Below, in pieces: positions 22,137 to 44,786 of a stretch of 64,000 bases of DNA (the stretch's first letter is position 1; every line of letters begins with the position of its first letter). The stretch spans positions 40,658 to 104,657 of the forward strand of contig JALMLS010000042.1 in NCBI GenBank assembly GCA_038496445.1, given 5' to 3'. Both the position numbers and the translations under genes were made by a program. The notes under the pieces are model-generated. The model had not been told where the DNA came from. It did not search any database and saw only the letters and a program-made list of their open reading frames with translations. The stretch comes from Trichosphaerium sp. ATCC 40318. Lineage: Eukaryota; Protista; Tubulinea.

Positions 22137-23087
22137 TTACTTTTGTTCATCTTCTATTTTCGTTCTTTTCCCACCTGCATCAGCGTCAGATGACTTACGT
22201 TTTCCACTGTTACCTTTTATTTCATCTCCTGGAGTGTCTTTAGCACATTTCTTATCTCCAATCTGAAAGGACAAATCCTTTATGTAAGCAGTAACTGGCT
22301 TAACAATAAGAGACTCATTAAGTTTCTTTAACGTTTCAGGTGTAATCCCAGATCCATCAATAAGCATCCATTCTTCTTTCAACTCGGGGTAAACAGTGGA
22401 AGTACCTTTAACAAGGTTCTTTGCCTTATCATTATTGCCTGACCCGTCGTCCTTTGGAACAAAATTTGGCTTGATTGTTACAGAATTTACTGATGATCCG
22501 TTCACACATCCTTGAAAATAATCGTGTCCTCTTGTTTTCTTAGCATCTCCAAAGTCAATACCAAGTATTTTTCCTACTTCTTTAGATACTTGATTCAGGG
22601 TTGAAGAAGTTTCAATCACGTGTAGATCTTCAGGTTGAAGTACTAGCATGCCCAAGTACTCTGCAAATGTCGGTGCAATTTGTTGATTGAGTTCGAGTTC
22701 AAGGTCAATGAAGCAAACGCTTGGGCACGTGGGTGTTGTTCTGTAGTCGAAACAAAAGTAGTAATGGCATCCATCACCATCGAAGGGTATAACATTGTCA
22801 AGAGAGAACTCCACCTCGGCATCTTCAAAACAATTGTCACTAAAAAGTGCGTTGCCTTGCTCAGCGATTCCATAGATTTGTTCAACTAAACCGCCTCCCG
22901 GTGCATCTTCTGGTAGGTTGAAGCGTATATAACCTCCGTTTTGTTGTTTTAGCAGTTGTTTGTACTCCTCAGGCAGTTTGTAACCAATTTTCTTTTCAGC
23001 TTTGTCTATCGCTTCTTGAGTTATCGGAGAAAGAACCCCTTGCATATATATAGGCGCAGACCATATTCTTGATTTAATTGTTGCCAT
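22137..23087 (-). CDS. SMI1/KNR4 (SUKH) family protein, intronless
   Basis: ITQEAIDKAEKKIGYKLPEEYKQLLKQQNGG...IPFDGDG.HYYFCFDYR...IAPTFAEYL. Basic NLS-like C-terminus. Confidence 0.88.
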   Translation of the reverse strand: MATIKSRIWSAPIYMQGVLSPITQEAIDKAEKKIGYKLPEEYKQLLKQQNGGYIRFNLPEDAPGGGLVEQIYGIAEQGNALFSDNCFEDAEVEFSLDNVIPFDGDGCHYYFCFDYRTTPTCPSVCFIDLELELNQQIAPTFAEYLGMLVLQPEDLHVIETSSTLNQVSKEVGKILGIDFGDAKKTRGHDYFQGCVNGSSVNSVTIKPNFVPKDDGSGNNDKAKNLVKGTSTVYPELKEEWMLIDGSGITPETLKKLNESLIVKPVTAYIKDLSFQIGDKKCAKDTPGDEIKGNSGKRKSSDADAGGKRTKIEDEQK

Positions 23088-23719: not shown

Positions 23720-25018
23720 ATGGCGTTAAAACAACAACGAACAACATATGTACTTCAAGAGCTCCCGCCTGAGACGCTAACACATATTCTACGATTTTTA
23801 AAGAGAAACCAAAGCATCACAGCTTCCACGGTCTCTCGCCTTTTCAATGACGTCATTCGTAATAATATTGGCTTTGATGCTGTTCATATGAGAGCACCAT
23901 CAGATATCGCTGTTCTCAAAGACAGTCCGTTACTAAAAAACACTAAAATAGTCTGTACAAACTTAAGAATCAAATTTTCAGAGGCTGACATTGAGTGTCT
24001 TTCTGGTGTTCATACAATAGATTTGGCTAATTCTTCAATTACTGATAATCATATCATCTCCTTAGTAAAAGGAGGACAACACAATATCCACAACATTGAC
24101 TTGAGTGGGACTGACATAACAGACGTATCACTGAAAGCTCTTAGATCTGTTCACACAATTGACATTTGTGGTTGTGGCAGTGTTACTGAAGATGGAATAA
24201 GATCACTGAGTGGTGTACACAAAATTAGTCTTCTTGCCGTGGAGGATTCATGGCTCAAACACCTTGGTGGTGTACACACACTCAACATTGGAAACTCGCA
24301 TGTATTGGATGAAGATGAGCTCAAAGCACTTACAAATGTCAAAGAGATGAGATTAGGTTATAGTGACATTACAGTGAAGCACTTTGTAAATCTACAGTCT
24401 CTCACACTTGATCAATGCCCCAAGGTTACAGACACTGGTTTGAAAAAATTGGTCAATCTTGAGTATCTCACTTTTGAAAAATGCAATATTACTGACGAAG
24501 GTTTAAAGCACTTGGTTAACCTAAAATACCTTAACATTGCAGAAAGTAAGAAGATTACAGGATCTTGCTTTAAGTATTTGTTTCAGAATCTTAAGAGCGT
24601 GCGCCTTGGAAACTGTAATGTTACAGACTTTGGTTTGCAGCATTTAGTTAATCTTGAACAACTTGAGCTTGTATATTGTACTGAGATTACAGGATCATGT
24701 TTCAAAGATTTGGGAAATCTCAAACGCCTTTGTATCTCTCGTTGTTCCAGCATCACGGATTCTTGTTTCAGCTATTTATCTGGTCTTAAAGAGTTGATTC
24801 TATCAAGTGAGAGTGTAGAAGACTCGGATTTGAAGAACTTGGTTAACCTTGTTTACTTTGAACCTCAAAATTGTCCAAAGATCACCATGAAGTGCTTGAC
24901 ACAAATGTCTTCTCTTGTATTTGTTGTGGTTCATAAATCTGTTCCATTTGATGAATATCAACGACAAGCTTTTGAACAGTTGGGCATTGTTTTACTCTTT
25001 CAAAGTCAGTTGGAATAA
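23720..25018 (+). CDS. F-box/leucine-rich-repeat protein, intronless
   Basis: F-box LQELPPETLTHILRFL...VSRLF. LRRs of type GVHTIDL..ITD and LVNLEYL. Confidence 0.9.
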   Translation: MALKQQRTTYVLQELPPETLTHILRFLKRNQSITASTVSRLFNDVIRNNIGFDAVHMRAPSDIAVLKDSPLLKNTKIVCTNLRIKFSEADIECLSGVHTIDLANSSITDNHIISLVKGGQHNIHNIDLSGTDITDVSLKALRSVHTIDICGCGSVTEDGIRSLSGVHKISLLAVEDSWLKHLGGVHTLNIGNSHVLDEDELKALTNVKEMRLGYSDITVKHFVNLQSLTLDQCPKVTDTGLKKLVNLEYLTFEKCNITDEGLKHLVNLKYLNIAESKKITGSCFKYLFQNLKSVRLGNCNVTDFGLQHLVNLEQLELVYCTEITGSCFKDLGNLKRLCISRCSSITDSCFSYLSGLKELILSSESVEDSDLKNLVNLVYFEPQNCPKITMKCLTQMSSLVFVVVHKSVPFDEYQRQAFEQLGIVLLFQSQLE

Positions 25019-25358
25019 TTGTAGAAATAAACAGATGCTCTTTTATTACTTACTTTGTTCTTTCATACAACACCCGCCTTTAACACTCAAGTCTTTCTAG
25101 CTGGTATTCATACAATGAACTAAACCATTATAAGAATAACTGACAAGGCATTAAGGCGTTGGTGGTGTACACAAGGTAGATCTTTGTCAAATTGTGGTAT
25201 CAATGAAGGGATTGAAGTACTCTAGCTTCCATCCTCCACTAACTCTCCTCCATCTCCAAACTTGCAGCAAAGAGGTCTTCCTCTTGGAGGCTAAAGGCTG
25301 CGTTAATCTAAAAGTCCAGTCCTGGGTTTTCTGAAAGTGCAAACATAAAACGATTTAA

Positions 25359-26082
25359 GGGTGGAGTCCTATAATGTCTCAATATCGATTAACCCCTCAC
25401 AGATTTGGCTATAATTTACTGTGAGTACTCAGCACGCCCAGTTATACCCTTTAGGTAGCGCTAAAAATTTTTTCCAATAAATGGAATTGCGTTTTTTACC
25501 TAAATTAAGCGACTTTTCACGCTCAGCTAACCCCTCTTCAATTCCGCTATAAACTTCCACAAAACACGTATTTACAGTCTTAAATGATATAGTGTGGTTT
25601 AAAAAGTTATTGCACAACACACAACATAGAATTTTGAAAAAAACATCTAAAAATAACAAATAATGTTTACGGTAAACACACAAAAAAAAAAATACAAGTT
25701 TTTGATACACAAAAAAACCAAAAAATAACACTTAAAAATTAGTTTTTTTCTCCAAAAACTGCACAGCTCATAAAATTCATAGATGGGTGCCACGTGCTGT
25801 GATGAAATGAACATGAATAATTTTTCATACAAGTAATGAAAAAAATGGTTACTGCTTAATTTGGAAGCTATGTGAAAAAAGCACGTGTCTGTTAAATCGC
25901 GTAGGCGTTAAGGTCATACGGTTTAATGTGGTAACAAAAAATCAGGTTAAAAAAACAGTTTTTGTCAATATAGGACTCTCAATATAGGACTCTCAATATA
26001 GGACTCTCAATATAGGACTCTCAATATAGGTCTCTCAATATAGGACTCTCAATGTTAAAAATGTCAATATAAGACTCCACCC
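25359..26082. mobile_element. Non-autonomous TIR DNA transposon with TTAA TSD (Kolobok-like termini)
   Basis: TTAA|GGGTGGAGTCCTATAATGTC ... GTCAATATAAGACTCCACCC|TTAA, 17/20 inverted match. Confidence 0.85.
25965..26053 (+). repeat. Tandem 14-bp repeat TCAATATAGGACTC x6 plus a partial copy
   Basis: Six adjacent copies with one mismatch. The unit matches the inner part of the element's TIR. Confidence 0.95.
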
Positions 26083-26217
26083 TTAATAAGAGGATGTTGT
26101 GGATTCACCATTATAATTCATTGAGCTAGCGAATAATTAGTAGACTGTGCTTACGTGGTAACAAGTGCGCTCAGTGCTAAAGGTACAGAACTTCAATCCC
26201 CATTTGAATTTTCAAAA

Positions 26218-26300
26218 TATTCAATGAATACTCCGAAAAACTAAAGTGTCACCCTCAAACGAGAAGTCTCGCCATTTCTTAGTCAATTTGGCAGTCTACA
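26218..26300 (+). pseudogene. Decayed duplicate fragment of the adjacent glycosyltransferase exon
   Basis: TTCAATGAATAC...AAACTAAAGTGTCACC...CTCGCCATTTCTTAGTCA matches about 26899-26980. Confidence 0.7.
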
Positions 26301-26473
26301 AAGTTTTAATATTGTTCAATGAAACGTTTCAATTCCTATCACGTGATATGCCTGGAAGAATAATTCAGTAAATACGAATTACGAACTCCTTTAGTGCTTA
26401 AGTGGTTTTAAAAAGCCAGTTGCTTGAGTACAACGCACAAACAACACCTCCTACAACATTTCTAACATCAACA

Positions 26474-28047
26474 ATGGCTGAACAACCAAAAACAATCCAC
26501 CAACAACTATGCGAACTACTACCAAACTTTCCTACGTTGAAACCGTCAGTTAAAGGGAAAACACCAAATGTAAGCTTTCGCCACAAAAAAAGAAGAAACC
26601 GGTACCAAAGCAGACAGGCTTTTGCCAAAAGCCTCCGCCTGTACATTTTGAAAGTATATGGGATCCAAACTCAAAGATGAAGCCTGGTACTGCCGCCCTT
26701 AGCTTTTCAGGAAGTTCAGAAGAATGCGTGTTGACGATAGAGCACAGCGGCACGTTCAAAGACATGATACAAACGGCCGTTTCTGATTCGGGATTACCTA
26801 TTGTACTCATGCCCTCACTCTCACGGTATGACAAAGGAGATTTTTGGACAGGAGAGGAAGAAAAGTGTTGCGTTGTTGTTTTTGTTGAGTCTCAAGAATT
26901 CAATGAATACTACAACAAACTAAAGTGTCACCTTTCGAAAGAGAACGCTCGCCATTTCTTAGTCAGTTGGCCTTCTACTTGGAAACATAGAGGCATAGGA
27001 TGCGCTCGACAAGGTGCCAAGTTCTTTGTACATGCTCTAAGACACGAATATGGAGAACTCTTTAATTTCTTTGCCATGGCAGATGACGACTTGAAGACTG
27101 CAGAGAAATTAAATGGGAAAAAAGATGAAGCAAAGTGGAAGAAATATAAGACTCTTTCTGACAACGCTAACTCTACCGGACAAGATGCAATTAAAGCCCT
27201 AATTATATCCTGCGAAAACCTTTCTATTTCTGAACCAAAAGAAGAAGCACAGGCCTTGGAAAAAGCTAATGCTGCTTGGAAGAAAATAGTAACTTTAAAA
27301 GGAGGCAGAGACGTACAGTTTTTACTTTTGTTTATTTCTTTGACTGACGCGTATAACTAGATAAAAACACCTCTAAACCGAGATGCTTTACTCAAAAAAA
27401 AAGACAGCAAACAACAGTTCTATGTCATGACTGATTACTCTCCGTACCAAGCGTTTGTAACACAATGGGTTGGAATTACTAAGTCAGAGTACATCAAGAT
27501 CCAGTGGTTGTACTTGCAATATGCAAGAGACCAATTTCCAAAAGTTAGTAGTCGTAAAATGCCACCACTTGTAGCGCAACTAGATCACGAATCTCAGTTT
27601 TGTTGCTCCCCTCCAAAACTCCAAGAAATGAAACAGTTTGTCACTTGTAACCAAGGCGGAGGAGTAATGGTTGCACACTTTGAATCAGTAAAAGATTGCT
27701 GGTATGTGGCTAGAAATGTATTTTTTCATTGATTGTATTCACTTGCTGTTAGGTATATTCCTCCAAAGCTTTTTTTCGATTGTAATGCACCTACTAAAGC
27801 TCCAGGAACTCCAAACAAGAAGCATAAATTGGATAACCCAGAAGGAAAGACATTCACGTTTTTTCAATGTGAGGATATGGTATTCTTTGAACAACTCATA
27901 GAAGATAACATTGCAACTTGTATTGGGTTAAAATTCATTCGAATGGATACCTTAAATCTTAAAAGTGTTGCTGGTACATCAAGTAGAACTTCAGCAGATG
28001 ATGAAACTCGCCGCAAAACATGGAATGATTCAATCAAAGTTGACTAG
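26474..28047 (+). CDS. GREB1-like / TET-associated (base-J type) GT-A glycosyltransferase
   Basis: Motif order LMPSLSR - VVVFVESQEFNEY - LVSWPS...GIGCAR - FAMADDDL - FQCEDMVF. Introns at about 26570-26613, 27313-27360 and 27702-27752. Confidence 0.72.
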
Positions 28048-28792
28048 AAACAATTTTTCTTTTCTGGCATGGTGATAGTTAGCAGTCCTCAACTTAGCAA
28101 TTGAGTGTACACTTGCAATAAATGACATTATCTTTTTTTTGGTTCAAGTCGTGTGAGCAACAGCTCAGTAATCAATTGTTATCGCCATTTTTTCATAAGT
28201 ATTATACTGCTTGGGTATGGAATAACACTAAACCAATAACGTTGCACTGCATTAAAATGTTGTAACGTTTGAAATGCGTTGATACAATATAAAACGCTTA
28301 CAGTAGAAAGTGTAAAAGTCAGCACTACCGATAATCTGAGTCAATTCCACTGTAGAACAACTTACAGTGTATTTGTAATGATTTACACGCCAGTTGACTA
28401 TGACGTAAAAGTGTGACTAGAAGTGGTCGATAAAAGGGTATAGCCGGTTTGCCCGTTAAGTTTTTGGGACCGGTTATAGCCGGCTACAACCTGCTAAGAA
28501 AAATAAGCAAAAACTCACCTTTTTTTGCATGATACTAGGCTCTGGACCTTTGTATCGACTGCACGAATTTCAGTGCCAATGAGACATGTATAACTTAAAA
28601 CAAGAATGTGGTGGCATGGTACAACACCATCAAAATCTCATATTTTTAAACGGATAGCTGATTACAGATTGTGTTGCTTCTTTTCTTAGCCGCCGGACCA
28701 CGACCACCTACCTAAGTGTGACTCACAGGATTCCACCTAAGGTACAAACCCTATTGCTTAAGACATTTTAAAGAATCAACTACCTACAAAGC

Positions 28793-29440
28793 ATGAATTG
28801 TAACGTGCCAATAACAAGTGAAACAGAGTATTTTGGCTATGAGGAAGACAAAGTAACGATTATCGTTGGTGATAAGACACTGTACGCTCATAAGATGTTA
28901 TTGGAAATGCACTCTCCTGTATTCGAGGCAATGCTAAAGCCCCATATGAAGGAAGGCAAATCAAAGGTGATTGAAATGAAAGTACGTATTCTTTACTTCA
29001 AAAAACAAACAAAATAAATAACGTGAATTCTAGGATAAGACATACGAAGATGTCTTCTTGCTTCTTTCGTTGATTTATAACCCCGGTGAACGTATTCCTG
29101 AAGATGCTTCGCGTTCTCTAGAACTAGTCAGGGAGTATCAAATCAAGTGGTTGCTTAATAAATGTGTTGATACAGTTTCAAAACGCGCCCAAACACCAAG
29201 TATGGAGCATTAAATAAACCTTGTACTAAGCGTGATATAGATCATTTCCTTCAAGTAGATCTTTGTGGTGACGCTTATGAAGATGTAATTTCGACCTACT
29301 TTCTTCCTTGGGCAAGTGGTAACTTAGCCAAAGTCCAACCTGTTATGCAATTCTTGACAGCTACTACGCATGAAAAATTAATTGCGCTCGTTGTTAATTC
29401 ACTTACAAAATCACAATTGGATAGCGATGACGACTGGTAA
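28793..29440 (+). CDS. BTB/POZ domain protein
   Basis: VTIIVGDKTLYAHKMLLEMHSPVFEAML..HMKEG...I.MKDKTYEDVFLLLSLIY. Two short introns. Confidence 0.88.
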
Positions 29441-31883: not shown

Positions 31884-33172
31884 GTGCACTTCCAAGCGCC
31901 TAATTACGGCTGTAGCGGCAGTACAGATAATTTTGATTCAAACAACAATGTAGAATCTACTCTGGGACTACTAGATATGCCTGTAGAGATACTGACGCTT
32001 ATACTACACCAAACAACAAATATAATTTGTCCATCAGCCCAAACATGCCGTAGACTTGCTTCAGTAGTCTACACAGTAACAGGATACAATAGCCTTAGAT
32101 TATTCGATGTACAAGCCGCTAAGTTCTTTGGCACCTGTTCTGGTATCCTAGCACACACGTACATTAAAGTAAGCGTATTCTTAACAAAGGCAGAAGTAAA
32201 TGAATGCATGAGAGCGCTTTCAGGTATAAAGACGATAGATCTTAGTAGAACGAAGGTAACAGATGAAGGAATAAAGTATCTTAAAGGTGTACATACGATA
32301 TACCTTGAATACACATCAATAACAGATAAGGGCGGACCCACGTTTTTTCCGAATTTTTCGAAAGAAAAAATTCGAAAAAATAGAATTCGATACAAAAACC
32401 GAATGCCTACACCCACCAATGGATCACTATATGTGAGCGAAGGTTGGGTTCTAGTTCCGAGCACAGCGAGGACCCGACCGTAAGTGAACCAGGCGCTTTC
32501 TAGTTGAGTGGACTGCCCTAGCTATGCATCTTTCTATGAATTCTATTTTTTCGAATTTTTGTTTTCGGAAAATTCGGAAAAAACTATGGCCCCGATAAGG
32601 GTGTATCAGAGTTATCTGGTGTTCATTATATTAATCTATCAAACACAGGTGTAACTAATAGATGCCTTAATGCACTCAGAGGTGTTCACACGATAAATCT
32701 TAGTCATACTTCTGTAGATGATGCTGGACTTGTTCCTCTTGCTGGCGTTCGCACAATATACCTATACAATACAAATGTAACAGACAAAGGTGTTAAGGTT
32801 CTTAAAGGGGTGCATACAATTGACTTGAGCAAAACACATGTCAAAGGACATTGTTTCAAGTCACTTCAAGGTGTTCATACTATTTACCTTGAGCGTACCG
32901 CTTTAGATGAAGACTGTATTCAGGACCTTTCTGGTGTACATACCATTAATCTAAGGCATACAAGAGTAACCAACAGAGGTCTCAAGTTATTGGGAAAAGG
33001 TGTTCATTCAATTGATTTAGGGTTTTGTTATAGTTTTGATGATGAAGGTGTTAGATATCTCGTTGAGGATGTTGGCATTAAGTTTTTAGGTTTGATAGGA
33101 AGTGGTATTTCAAAGAGATATTATGCAGAGCTTTTACAAAAGAGTGGACCAAATACTCTTACGCTCCAATAA
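31884..33172 (+). pseudogene. F-box/LRR gene interrupted by a MITE
   Basis: F-box LLDMPVEILTLIL and GVHTI.L LRRs on both sides of the insertion. Removing 32333-32601 restores ...SITDKGVSELSGVHYINL. Confidence 0.85.
32333..32593. mobile_element. 261-bp MITE with about 56-bp TIRs and 8-bp TSD GATAAGGG
   Basis: TSD at 32325-32332 and 32594-32601. TIR core GTTTTTTCCGAATTTT.CGAAA..AAAAATTCGAAAAAATAGAATTC. Confidence 0.92.
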
Positions 33173-33524: not shown

Positions 33525-34214
33525 TCAGGTAATAATGTTTGTGTTTTGACGCTTGCCATTTTTATACTTTCTTTTGCAGGTTAGTTGACCTTGTTCGTTC
33601 CACTCACTATATTCTCCTTCCAGTTTACCATTTATATAATAAGAAAACCGTTTTAATTGACCGTTATCAAACCATGTCTTATACTCTCCTTCTAATTTCT
33701 TATTGGAATAAAAAATCTTTGCACTTTTTTCTCCATTAACATGCCATCTATTTACCTCTCCTTCAGCTTTATTATCCTTCATATAACAATGAGTTGATAA
33801 TACACCATTACTATACCATAGTTTATAATCTCCTTCAAGTTTACCATCAACATAATGACATAATCTGTTTAATACACCACTATTAAGCCACGTTTTGAGT
33901 TCACCATCAAGCTTGCCATTCTTAAAATTACGATGTATCTTAAGCACAAAGTCACCAGCTCTGACTTTTGTAACTTTCTTGTTTGGATCAAATTTGTACC
34001 AACACTTGTATGAACCATGACGTATACCATGACTATAATACTGTTGATGTATGATGCATATCACAATACCTGTAGACTTTTTATGTTTGATCCATTTTCC
34101 ATTTTTTTCAAAGTTATCATCAAACCTTGTTGACAAGGCTGTTTTCTTTGATAGTAATGCCCACTTTTGATAAACTTCAAAGTCTTTATCTATAATATCA
34201 AGTTGTAACTCCAT
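33525..34214 (-). CDS. MORN-variant (YwqK-like) repeat protein with F-box-like N-terminus, intronless
   Basis: Repeats GKLEGEYKxWYxNGxL. SLLQLPMELQLDI lies in frame around the first ATG. Confidence 0.85.
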   Translation of the reverse strand: MELQLDIIDKDFEVYQKWALLSKKTALSTRFDDNFEKNGKWIKHKKSTGIVICIIHQQYYSHGIRHGSYKCWYKFDPNKKVTKVRAGDFVLKIHRNFKNGKLDGELKTWLNSGVLNRLCHYVDGKLEGDYKLWYSNGVLSTHCYMKDNKAEGEVNRWHVNGEKSAKIFYSNKKLEGEYKTWFDNGQLKRFSYYINGKLEGEYSEWNEQGQLTCKRKYKNGKRQNTNIIT

Positions 34215-37511: not shown

Positions 37512-38084
37512 TTAAAGAATACGACACTTCTTCCTACTCTTTTTATCTTTTTTTGATTTCTTTCCCTTTTTCTCTGGGACAGTCCTTCTGCGTATGACTC
37601 TCACAAGTTCAAAAAATGATTCTTCAACGTTCATCCGCGTCATCGCTGACGCTTCAAAAAAAGGACATCCAAATTCTTTTGCTCTTGTTTCGCCATCAGT
37701 TGTTGTGACTTGTCGCTCATCTTCAAGATCAGCTTTATTACCAACAAGTATCATAGGAACATTGTCGTCTTCTTTAACTCTCACAATTTGATTTTTGAAT
37801 TGGTAGAGCTCGTCAAAGCTGTTTGTACTCGTGATGGAATAAGTGAGTATAAACCCAGTGCCTGTTCTCATATATTGATCTCTCATTGCGGAGTATTCTT
37901 CTTGTCCGGCTGTATCAAGAATATCCAAAAAAGCTACTTCATCGTCTATTACGACTTGTTTGCGATAAGAATCTTCAATTGTAGGGTCATATTCATCGAT
38001 GAAGTGGTTTTGAATGAGTTGTATTGTAAGAGCCGATTTACCGACGCCACCGCCTCCAACGATTACTAGTTTGTATTCAGTCAT
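37512..38084 (-). CDS. ras: Ras GTPase (RasG-like), intronless
   Basis: [28 protein letters not shown] and CAAX motif CRIL. Confidence 0.97.
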
Positions 38085-38704: not shown

Positions 38705-39811
38705 ATGACAACGAAGCATAGTACAAACAATGAGAAGAGATTTAGCAATAAATCTCTCAGTTGCCATCTATTAAGCCTTCCCGTTGAGATTCAACTCGAT
38801 ATCGTTGATTTAGAGGTATCATTGTATTGTATTTGGCCTCTTCTGTCGAAAACAAGCGCAATGATGACAAGGTACGATGGAGAGATGCAAAAACATGGAA
38901 AATGGTTAAGAAGAACATCTAACAACCAACTTGTAAGTAGGCTAACTAATCAAGTTCTTCATTTTGAACCTAGATACTCAATAGTTTGATATTAGGCTCT
39001 TCAACAACATTGGTCACATGGTAAGAGACACGGGGAACACAAGAAGTGGTATGGTAATGGAAAATTGCATGAGAAGTGTAGCTACATCGACAGTAAACTT
39101 AATGGAGAATATAAGCGGTGGTTTGCAAATGGCCAATTGTGGTTACAGTTTGTTTATGTCAATGGTAAACTTGATGGAGAGTATAAGGAGTGGCTTGAAA
39201 ATGGTCAATTGATACAGCACTGCATTTGCGTCAATGGTAAACGAGAAGGAGAGTACAGGAGTTGGTACAAAAATGGCCAGTTAAGAGAGTATTGCACGTA
39301 TGTCTTGGGCAATATTGAAGGAGAATACAAGCAATGGAATGATAACGGACATTTGAAAGAGGAATGTACTTATGTAGCAGGTAATCTAGTAGGAGAATAC
39401 AAGCAATGGTATGATGATACTCAATTGTGTAAGTGGGTTAAATATGTTAATGGCAATTATGCTCAGTGTAAGCTTGAAGCAGAGTATAAGATTTGGCATG
39501 TCAATGGCCAACTTAGAGAACACTTTTATTATGTGAATGGTAAACGACATGGAGAGTATAAGAAGTGGTACGCCAATGGCCAATTGTGGTCACAGTTCAA
39601 TTATATCAATGGTAAACGACATGGAGAGTACAAGCAATGGTACAACAATGGCCAATTGATACAGAAAAGCAATTATGTCAATGGTAGCCTAGAAGGAGAG
39701 TTCAAGCAGTGGTACAACAGTGGTCAATTGATACGACAGTGTATGTATGTCAATGGTAAACTTTTAACGCCTGATATAGACTACAATAATTATTGGTGTG
39801 AGTTGTTATAG
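38705..39811 (+). CDS. F-box-like + MORN-variant repeat protein A (intron 38933-38995)
   Basis: Exon 1 LLSLPVEIQLDIV, phase-0 GT-AG intron, exon 2 with about 12 NGKxxGEYKxWYxNGQL repeats. Confidence 0.88.
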
Positions 39812-40328: not shown

Positions 40329-41463
40329 ATGCAGCACAGTACAAACAATGAGAAGAGATTTAGCAATAAATCTCTCAGTTGCCATCTATTAAGCCTTCCC
40401 GTTGAGATTCAACTCGATATCGTTGATTTAGAGGTATCATTGTATTGTATTTGGCCTCTTCTGTCGAAAACAAGCGCAATGATGACAAGGTACGATGGAG
40501 AGATGCAAAAACATGGAAAATGGCAAAGATGGAAACACTCATGGCAAGAAAACCGCATTGTACTTGTAAGTGATATTTTCTTACAACTAGTCTTCAAATT
40601 TCTTCAGTGAGACGCTAACTTACACATTAAAACCATTTTTAATCGCATTCTAGACTCATGAACAACATTGGTCTCATGGTAAGCAACATGGGGAACAGAA
40701 AGAGTGGTATGAAAATGGAACCTTGCTTGAGGAGTGTAACTATAATGTCGGTGTACTTGAAGGCGAGTATAAAAAGTGGTTTGAAAATGGGCAATTATGG
40801 GTGCAGTCTGTTTATGCCAATGGTAAACTCGAAGGAGTGTCCAAGGTGTGGTATGAAAATGGCCAATTGAACAGCCACAACAGTTTTGTCAATGGTACCA
40901 TTGAAGGGGAGTCCAAAGAGTGGAAACCTAATGGAAAAATACATTGGCATTGTAATTATGTCAACGGTATACTTGAAGGAGAGTATAAGATGTGGTTTAA
41001 TGGTCAACACGAGATCTTTAATTATGTCAACAATAAACGACATGGAGAGAACAAGAGGTGGTATGCCAATGGTAATATGCTCTGGCATTTAAATTACACC
41101 AATGGTAGACGACATGGAGAGTACAAGTGGTGGCATGAAAATGGTCAATTGAGGGAGCAAAGTAAGTATGTCAATGGTATACGGGCAGGAGAGTACAAGC
41201 TCTGGGATACCAATGGACAACTTATAGAGCATAGCAATTATATCACTGGTAACCTTGATCCAGATTCAGGCTATTCTATTGGTATACTAGATGGAGAGTT
41301 CAAGAAGTGGCATACTAATGGCCAATTGGCACAGCATTGCACGTATGTCAATGGTAAACGAGAAGAGGAGTACAAACAGTGGGATGCCAATGGCCAATTG
41401 GAGGAGTATTACACTTACGTCAATGGTAAACGTGAAGGAGAGAACAGGTGTTTGCTGATGTAA
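40329..41463 (+). CDS. F-box-like + MORN-variant repeat protein B (intron 40566-40653)
   Basis: Exon 1 nearly identical to gene A. Phase-0 intron at the homologous site, followed by the repeat exon. Confidence 0.88.
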
Positions 41464-41864: not shown

Positions 41865-42434
41865 ATGACTGAATACAAACTAGCAGTCGTTGGAGGCGGT
41901 GGTGTCGGTAAATCCGCTCTTACAATACAACTCATTCAAAACCACTTTGTTGATGACTATGACCCTACAATTGAAGATTCTTATCGCAAACAAGTCGTAA
42001 TAGACGATGAAGTAGCTCTTTTGGATATTCTTGATACAGCCGGACAAGAAGAATATGCCGCAATGAGAGATGGATACATGAGATCAAGCACTGGGTTTAT
42101 ACTCACTTATTCCATCACAAGTAAAACCAGCTTTGACGAGCTCTACCAATTCAAAAATCAAATTGTGAGAGTTAAAGAAGACGACAATGTTCCTATGATA
42201 CTTGTTGGTAATAAAGCTGATCTTGAAGATGAGCGACAAGTCACAACAACTGATGGAGAAAACAGAGCAAAAGAATTTGGATGTCCTTTTTTTGAAGCGT
42301 CAGCGATGACGCGGATGAACGTTGAAGAATCATTTTTTGAACTTGTGAGAGTCATACGCAGAACAGTCTCAGAGAAGAAGGGAAAGAAATCAAAAAACGA
42401 TAAAAAGAGTAGGAAGAAGTGTCGTATTCTTTAA
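41865..42434 (+). CDS. ras: Ras GTPase, inverted duplicate of 37512-38084
   Basis: Same G1-G5 motifs and CRIL. Flanks are also homologous. Confidence 0.97.
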
Positions 42435-43812: not shown

Positions 43813-44786
43813 ATGGGCAGTAATAGCAGCAAAGATGGAAAAAATTATAGGTAAGTTCAGTACACCAACCTTGCGGTTATCAAGCGATGAGTAGATTGAC
43901 TTACGCACTTGTAGCGCCTTCAAACCCTCCAGCGAATACTAAAACGTCAAATGTAGAATAGTACATTCGTTTTTAGGCTTGTTACCGTAGCTTACATTGT
44001 TGTAGTGATGGTTCGTTCAAAGTCATTACTGTTGGTGATATGGGTGTTGGAAAGACAAAATTTGTACTGAGATTCGTTGATGACACATTTCCAGTTCATT
44101 ACACCACAATAGATGTCTTTGTACGTAATACGCAACATGCAAACAATGTCAAAACGTTGTTCTCCCACCAATACGCTGCTCACATTTTAGTTTGACATAT
44201 CACGTGTTAGAAATACTAGCTCATGTTTTCGTAGAGGGAAAAAACAATTCAAGTCGATGGCCACCGAATAAAACTACAAGTTTGGGATTTTTGCGGTATG
44301 CTTTCTCATTTTGTTGCTATGAGGGTTTTTTTAAAGATGTTTCTATAGGTCAGGAACGATTCCACACCCAAGGTATTAGTCAATGGAGACGTACTAAAGG
44401 TGTTTTGATTTTATATGATATTACACGCCAGGGGTCTTTTGATAATGTAAAACGGTGGCTAAAAGTGGTTGAAAGATATGCAATGGATACTGTACAAATA
44501 ATACTTGTTGGAACAAAAAGTGATCTAACAGATGACCGTGTTGTTGACACTGCTGTCGCCAAGGTAAAGTCAATAAGTTGTATTGTAACGAAAGTACTGT
44601 CTTTTGATATTTATCTTAGGCATTAGCTGATCAACTCGAGATAAAGTTCATTGAAACATCAGCCAAAGATGGTATAAACGGTATGGTACATTTTAATGTA
44701 GTTTCTTACTTGCGTTTTTAGTAAACGAAGCTTTTGATGCACTAGCATCTGCCATAATAGAACTAGAAACAATTGAAGAATCTTAA
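43813..44786 (+). CDS. Divergent Rab1-like GTPase with MGSNSS N-terminus (1-nt frameshift in an A6 run of exon 1)
   Basis: GDMGVGKT, WDFCGQERF, GTKSDL, FIETSAK. Ends ..IELETIEES*. Confidence 0.7.

Follow-up and report, generated by a model that had tools for sequence, protein, structure and literature searches.

Phage TET/JBP-associated glycosyltransferases (TAGTs) and the kinetoplastid base-J glucosyltransferase (JGT) take as their acceptor the hydroxymethyl group of 5-hydroxymethyluracil (5hmU) or 5-hydroxymethylcytosine (5hmC) in DNA, an assignment that for the phage enzymes comes from gene context; JGT works in the nucleus, where it glucosylates 5hmU. To our knowledge, base J, found in kinetoplastids and related organisms, is the sole glycosylated DNA base described from eukaryotes, and the only other eukaryotic TAGT-type domain to have been studied, that of GREB1, is reported to modify protein. 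Here, we describe a gene from the marine amoebozoan Trichosphaerium sp. ATCC 40318, located at positions 26474-28047 on the + strand of a 64,000-nucleotide stretch of genomic DNA (contig JALMLS010000042.1 of assembly GCA_038496445.1, positions 40,658 to 104,657; hereafter the window). The gene has three exons and is transcribed, and the core of its 491-residue product, P0001 (approximately residues 105-470), is very probably a highly divergent TAGT-type GT-A glycosyltransferase. Of the eukaryotic systems with which it can be compared, JGT is a stand-alone member of the TAGT superfamily, while GREB1 is a protein of ~1,950 residues in which a Zn-binding domain at the N terminus and an inactive, circularly permuted superfamily 2 (SF2) helicase precede the C-terminal glycosyltransferase domain (PMC7968844). 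GREB1 has been reported to O-GlcNAcylate ERalpha, with an in vitro activity that its authors describe as weak and not donor-specific (PMC7968844).

Profile, embedding and fold evidence agree on this assignment, which the original prediction had put forward as a stand-alone glycosyltransferase of the TAGT or GREB1 C-terminal type. All whole-protein analyses were run on P0001, a database protein from the same strain (MMETSP0405) that was retrieved by searching with residues 69-280 and that stands in for the spliced product. The sole Pfam match is PF20691 (TAGT), with E-values of 1.9e-5 for the exon piece, 3e-5 for a longer piece, and 7.7e-5 for P0001 itself. When compared by hhalign with alignments of phage TAGTs, drawn from GenBank sequences and 80 IMG/VR loci, P0001 gave an E-value of 0.0084, its one detected relative P0002 (described below) 0.00095, and the pair 0.002, and each comparison paired the same four motifs: PSxxR, VVE, LP..G..AR, and DD[DN]. 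An embedding search with residues 95-275, which is independent of the alignments built here, found that each of the 30 named ESM-Atlas clusters closest to it is TAGT, the best of them scoring 0.93. The family call itself is not new, since PF20691 was already listed for P0001 in the precomputed annotation of its collection; what is new here is the gene model, the indel in the window, the near-orphan status of the protein, and the map of its motifs.

The five motifs on which the original prediction was built (MPSLSR, VVVFVESQEFNEY, WPS..RGIGCAR, FAMADDD, and CEDMVF) are all present, in that order, in the + strand translations between the ATG at 26474 and the TAG at 28045-47. In a 64-row alignment of P0001 and P0002 with 62 viral TAGT domains, the N-terminal motif order of the family, P-[ST]-x-x-R, VVE, LP..G..AR, DD[DN], is complete in P0001. 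PSLSR (residues 114-118; 26812..26826) follows the first beta strand and places R118 in an invariant column; VVVFVE (residues 134-139; 26872..26889) forms the second strand and places E139 in a nearly invariant column, that of the viral 'VVE'; and WPSTWKHRGIGCAR (residues 166-179; 26968..27009) places R179 in the invariant column of the viral 'G..ARN'. The DDD at residues 204-206 (27082..27090) is the DxD metal/nucleotide-sugar motif, with D204 and D205 in invariant columns, and it sits at the end of a modelled strand (residues 199-203) with a predicted local distance difference test (pLDDT) of 85-90.

The acidic motif of the C-terminal half has two candidate positions. The stretch W329..Y334-R336-D337 (27505..27531), common to P0001 and P0002, is the counterpart that MAFFT chooses for the viral 'RW.GRYNEDTD', in a region with pLDDT below 50. 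The other candidate acidic/catalytic motif is FQCED (residues 431-435; 27862..27876), part of 'CEDMVF' and represented by FQGED in P0002; among local matches between the C-terminal part of P0001 and the viral TAGT profile ('nEDtDlsLqvL'), it ranks first, although its E-value of 0.1 is not significant. If FQCED is the acidic motif, ~110 additional residues would separate DDD from the C-terminal half of P0001. We discarded a further alignment, in which the viral TAGTs were divided into N- and C-terminal halves, because it was badly misaligned.

The fold of the protein was predicted with an AlphaFold model guided by the same 64-row alignment. The model has a predicted template modelling score (pTM) of 0.61, with pLDDT values of 78-92 over residues 90-215 and 74-81 over residues ~240-260, and its order of strands and helices is that of the GT-A nucleotide-binding half, with DDD closing strand 199-203. 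In an exhaustive comparison with 48,161 PDB representatives, the top matches were GT-A enzymes: MGAT2 (Z 12.1), POMGnT1 (12.0), hyaluronan synthase (11.9), GnT-I (11.8), and SpsA (10.9). Foldseek returned COLGALT1, POMGnT1, LH3, and GnT-I with E-values of 6e-5 to 1e-3; a shape search of the ESM Atlas ranked a TAGT cluster first (TM 0.45/0.62), and TAGT proteins headed the list in BFVD (E 3e-7). The original prediction had named structure prediction as a check for a GT-A fold, and the alignment-guided model does match GT-A structures, at Z 10-12. In this model, the N-terminal half of P0001 is confidently predicted as a GT-A fold, compatible with TAGT.

Several observations weigh against the TAGT assignment and temper the strength with which we hold it. 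The Pfam scores (23.2-25.1 bits) lie below the curated cut-off of 27.5 bits and cover only positions 3-110 of the 205 in the profile. Hidden Markov models (HMMs) built from phage TAGTs alone give 1.2 bits for P0001 and 14.6 bits for P0002, and a six-frame scan of the window with these phage-only profiles found nothing above noise; as these models are far weaker than that of Pfam, P0001 is not close to the sampled phage TAGT branch. The single-sequence AlphaFold model of P0001 failed (pLDDT 33), and in the alignment-guided model the C-terminal half is poorly modelled, with pLDDT of 40-66 past residue 320, so that both candidates for the C-terminal acidic motif (viral NEDTD, followed by GGN) fall in poorly modelled sequence. 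The fold match speaks for compatibility with the family and is not an independent proof of it, because the guiding alignment is itself made of TAGT sequences. The window, finally, is without a TET/JBP gene, as the original prediction had noted: translated in six frames and searched with a narrow TET profile of phage origin, it gave a best E-value of 0.38, and Pfam scans of the larger open reading frames (ORFs) found no TET/JBP-like ORF.

The gene model rests on four in-frame ORF stretches bordered by GT..AG and on transcript-derived contigs from three public runs of two studies (X1, X2, and X3), which were placed on window positions 26300-28300. All features of the gene lie on the + strand. 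The contigs begin at 26409, 26418, or 26431 and end at 28116 or 28132, and we give the transcribed span as 26418..28132, from the mRNA 5' end to the last transcript-covered base; 26418 is probably the mRNA 5' end, and the tail of a SMART template-switch oligo in an X3 contig ends at this position. The coding part of exon 1 (26474..27312) starts with the ATG at 26474, encodes residues 1-280, and is unbroken in all transcripts, including an X1 contig that runs from 26431 to 27312 without a joint. Intron 1 (27313..27360; 48 nt, GT..AG) is removed by a joint 27312>27361 in X1, X2, and X3. Exon 2 (27361..27701) encodes residues 281-393 and two bases of W394, and is followed by intron 2 (27702..27752; 51 nt, GT..AG), seen as a 51-nt skip in X1 and X2. 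The coding part of exon 3 (27753..28047) encodes residues 394-491 and the stop codon TAG, and an AATAAA at 28117..28122, close to the transcript ends at 28116-28132, is a likely polyadenylation signal. Window segments 26474-26554, 26557-27312, 27361-27699, and 27754-28044 correspond to residues 1-27, 29-280, 281-393, and 395-491 of P0001, with L420K as the sole mismatch.

All three transcript sets carry an intact frame of 491 codons, and no more than three positions set them apart from the window. Two of these are the TT at 27829..27830, which is AA in the transcripts and accounts for L420K. The third is in the GGG run at 26555..26557, where the window is one G short relative to X1, X2, and X3, which have an extra G behind 26554. 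As written, the window is therefore frameshifted at 26555-57: its ORF spans 26402-26680, and the frame opened by the ATG at 26474 stops at 26680, whereas the additional G of the transcripts brings this ATG into frame with the long ORF that begins at 26677. A first gene model, in which a 107-nt intron (26570-26676) rescued the frame, was rejected on the grounds that the transcripts retain this stretch and carry the extra G. The published genome (37.7% GC) is a Canu assembly of Nanopore and PacBio reads of amplified DNA, polished with Pilon (PMC10521059), and the missing G is thus most simply explained as an assembly indel, which we consider likeliest, with an allelic difference as the alternative. 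Indel errors of this long-read type may touch other gene models of the same assembly. We also rejected the idea that the locus derives from a giant-virus or phage contaminant, given that its GC content (39%) is like that of the genome, that the gene has two spliced GT..AG introns, and that the neighbouring genes are eukaryotic.

P0001 has neither a signal peptide nor a transmembrane segment, its 19-residue Kyte-Doolittle mean peaking at 1.09, and it is basic (isoelectric point 8.8), with lysine clusters at residues 39-42 (KKKK), 292-294 (KKK), and 416-419 (KKHK); on both counts the original prediction, which had described an unanchored protein with several basic clusters, holds. The first cluster, embedded in SPQKKKKPVPK (KKKK at 26587..26598), resembles a classical nuclear localisation signal and may act as one. 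A Pfam scan of the 491 residues found TAGT only, with no GREB1 Zn-binding or helicase module; because these modules are absent, P0001 is not a GREB1 orthologue.

P0001 is a near-orphan. A phmmer search with residues 69-280 against 1.84 billion cluster representatives (E <= 1e-3) found only one other protein, P0002, of 341 residues, which is encoded on a contig of a JGI metagenome and shares 31% identity with P0001 over 89 residues. P0002 matches Pfam TAGT independently (E 0.004) and has the motifs IPSFAR, VLIFVE, LPEGWERRGIPCAR, QIDDD, and FQGEDFRF. Its contig (L001, 1-1267; JGI 3300030741) has 32% GC, the called start lacks an ATG, and an ORF in another frame ends 5 nt upstream; the contig probably represents a eukaryotic transcript or gene whose model is incomplete. 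The same phmmer search of the full library returned no kinetoplastid protein at E <= 1e-3, a result of the library search only, with no direct alignment to JGT, and at the level of sequence no close kinship of P0001 to JGT appears detectable. Word-index protein searches with a 227-residue ORF, P0001, and P0002 returned the queries themselves only, and a related-locus search with the alignment of P0001 and P0002 gave no locus in metagenome contigs or in viral ones. Among PDB sequences, neither P0001 nor the phage TAGT alignment had a meaningful match; searches of PHROGs and NCBIfam gave no match, and neither did a tblastn search of phages with residues 95-215 of P0001. A tblastn search of 50,697 phage records with P0002 gave three weak matches, two of them to phage P12024L, in its GenBank record and in its RefSeq record, and both on one gene (E 8), gp27, which Pfam clearly identifies as a TAGT (4e-21).

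We infer the activity, sugar donor, localisation, and acceptor of P0001 from its motifs and its family. As the DxD motif and the invariant arginines are intact, the protein would be a metal-dependent UDP-sugar transferase, in which DDD (204-206) may bind a divalent metal and the diphosphate of the uridine diphosphate (UDP)-sugar, R118, E139, and R179 may line the nucleotide pocket, and a C-terminal acidic residue (E434/D435 or D337) may activate an acceptor hydroxyl that then takes the sugar. Because P0001 lacks both a signal peptide and a membrane anchor and has lysine clusters that resemble nuclear localisation signals, we expect this acceptor to be nucleocytoplasmic. Going by family precedent, DNA would be a tentative candidate for the acceptor and protein an equally tentative one, the remainder of our expectation falling to some other acceptor or to no activity at all.

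If the acceptor is DNA, P0001 would enter the nucleus and glycosylate 5hmU or 5hmC to leave a base-J-like mark, which we regard as possible, if on the unlikely side. In the nearest family, TAGT, those members that are characterised or placed by gene context act on hydroxymethylpyrimidines in DNA; in phage P12024L (L002, 3116-5381), gp27 has on one side gp26, which encodes a Tet_JBP dioxygenase (Pfam 6e-27), and on the other a gene for a methyltransferase; and P0001 is soluble and basic, with KKKK and KKHKK clusters reminiscent of nuclear localisation signals and with lysine-rich insertions. Set against this are the 64-kb window, which holds no TET/JBP gene or other hydroxymethylase, and JGT, which is not among the full-library matches at E <= 1e-3. 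The missing TET/JBP neighbour says little, because a gp26-like (Tet_JBP) ORF lies within 3 kb in only 12 of ~80 viral TAGT loci and adjacency is thus not obligatory. We know of no report of glycosylated DNA bases in Amoebozoa, which also counts against a DNA acceptor. GREB1, moreover, shows that a TAGT-type domain can take a protein acceptor (PMC7968844), and on this precedent P0001 could be a nucleocytoplasmic O-glycosyltransferase that places a hexose or N-acetylhexosamine on Ser/Thr of cytosolic or nuclear proteins. Such a role would suit a soluble protein without a secretory signal and needs no DNA-oxidising partner, and the neighbouring F-box/LRR, BTB, and SUKH genes are of protein-interaction or ubiquitin-adaptor types, although adjacency in a eukaryotic genome carries little weight. 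We regard it as equally possible, if again on the unlikely side: the in vitro activity of GREB1 itself is weak and not donor-specific (PMC7968844), P0001 lacks the Zn and helicase modules specific to GREB1, and no acceptor candidate is known.

A further reading, that the window holds a decaying or inactive copy, in which the frameshift at 26555-57 is real or catalysis has been lost through a degenerate C-terminal acidic motif and long insertions, seems improbable. It would account for the frameshift of the window relative to all transcripts, for the gene fragment directly upstream (26218-26300), for the extreme divergence of a protein with a single distant relative, and for the replacement of the viral 'ED' by 'RD' in P0001 and P0002, which appears in one candidate alignment. 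It fits poorly, however, with an intact 491-codon frame in three transcript sets from two studies that differ from the window at three positions, with an assembly built from long reads, and with a DxD motif and invariant arginines that are intact alongside an FQCED conserved with P0002. Returning to an active TAGT-type enzyme that acts on DNA, its most far-reaching form would be that Trichosphaerium nuclear DNA bears a glycosylated hydroxymethylpyrimidine, base-J-like or glucosyl-5hmC-like, which P0001 writes on hydroxymethyl groups supplied by an unrecognised dioxygenase. This form we judge distinctly unlikely, and DNA glycosylation in general would range from there up to a tentative possibility; it would be notable if shown, as it would place DNA glycosylation in a eukaryote beyond Euglenozoa.

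The original prediction had the gene sitting among transposons, which is not what we find. The flanking genes form a run of protein-interaction/ubiquitin-adaptor types: a SUKH-1 (SMI1/KNR4) protein at 22137-23087 (-), an F-box/LRR protein at 23720-25018 (+), a BTB-domain exon at 28793-29017 (+), and an F-box-like ORF at 31884-32483 (+). Farther along, ORFs with MORN_2 repeats (33525-34214 (-), 39065-39811 (+), and 40723-41463 (+)) are interleaved with three ORFs of Ras-family GTPases (37512-38084 (-), 41865-42434 (+), and 44192-44626 (+)), an arrangement suggestive of a gene pair duplicated in place. The neighbours in the window also include homeodomain, ABC, and sulfatase genes. The sole mobile element seen is a 732-bp element at 25355-26086 that resembles a miniature inverted-repeat transposable element (MITE), present in one copy in the window, with 22-nt terminal inverted repeats (91% complementary) and flanking TTAA, a piggyBac-type target duplication; inside it, at 25965-26062, a 14-nt unit (TCAATATAGGACTC) is repeated six times in tandem. 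The partial duplicate that the original prediction placed just upstream of the gene is real but tiny: 83 nt at 26218..26300 (+), 120-200 nt upstream of the mRNA start and ~85% identical to the coding stretch 26896-26975.

Comparison with known systems places P0001 among several groups of GT-A enzymes at different distances. MGAT2 (5vcm), POMGnT1 (5ggf), GnT-I (1fo9), and SpsA (1h7l) have the same fold (Z 10.9-12.1 over 190-230 residues) and a DxD at the end of the equivalent strand, but with identities of 6-11% there is no family link at the level of sequence, and these are Golgi or bacterial enzymes that act on glycans. GREB1 and GREB1L, nucleocytoplasmic proteins of animals, have a GT-A domain of the TAGT type and motifs parallel to those of P0001, which is just 491 residues long. 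JGT, like P0001, is stand-alone and eukaryotic, and has a JBP1/2-type hydroxylase as a known partner, whereas none is known here.

The TAGT family, represented by phage enzymes such as gp27 of Persicivirga/Nonlabens phage P12024L, supplies the clusters nearest to P0001 both by embedding and by shape, yet the identity to the phage enzymes is only ~15%. The RefSeq label of gp27, 'beta-glucosyl-HMC-alpha-glucosyltransferase', has been carried to many homologues in T4-like Aeromonas phages, and TAGT domains occur as tandem pairs, within one ORF or in adjacent ORFs, in many viral contigs (IMG/VR L026, L038, L043, L049, and others). Unlike the phage genes, that of P0001 is eukaryotic and intron-bearing, and it encodes a protein that is longer by ~100 residues at the N terminus and has lysine-rich insertions behind DDD; no TET, methyltransferase, or hydroxymethylase adjoins it, and its C-terminal acidic motif is insecurely aligned. 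What the phage TAGTs and P0001 have in common is the order of the N-terminal motifs and the GT-A fold, which for P0001 comes from the model. As an expressed, stand-alone, and soluble TAGT-type protein in an amoebozoan, P0001 may serve, next to JGT and GREB1, as a handle on DNA versus protein marking in a third eukaryotic lineage.

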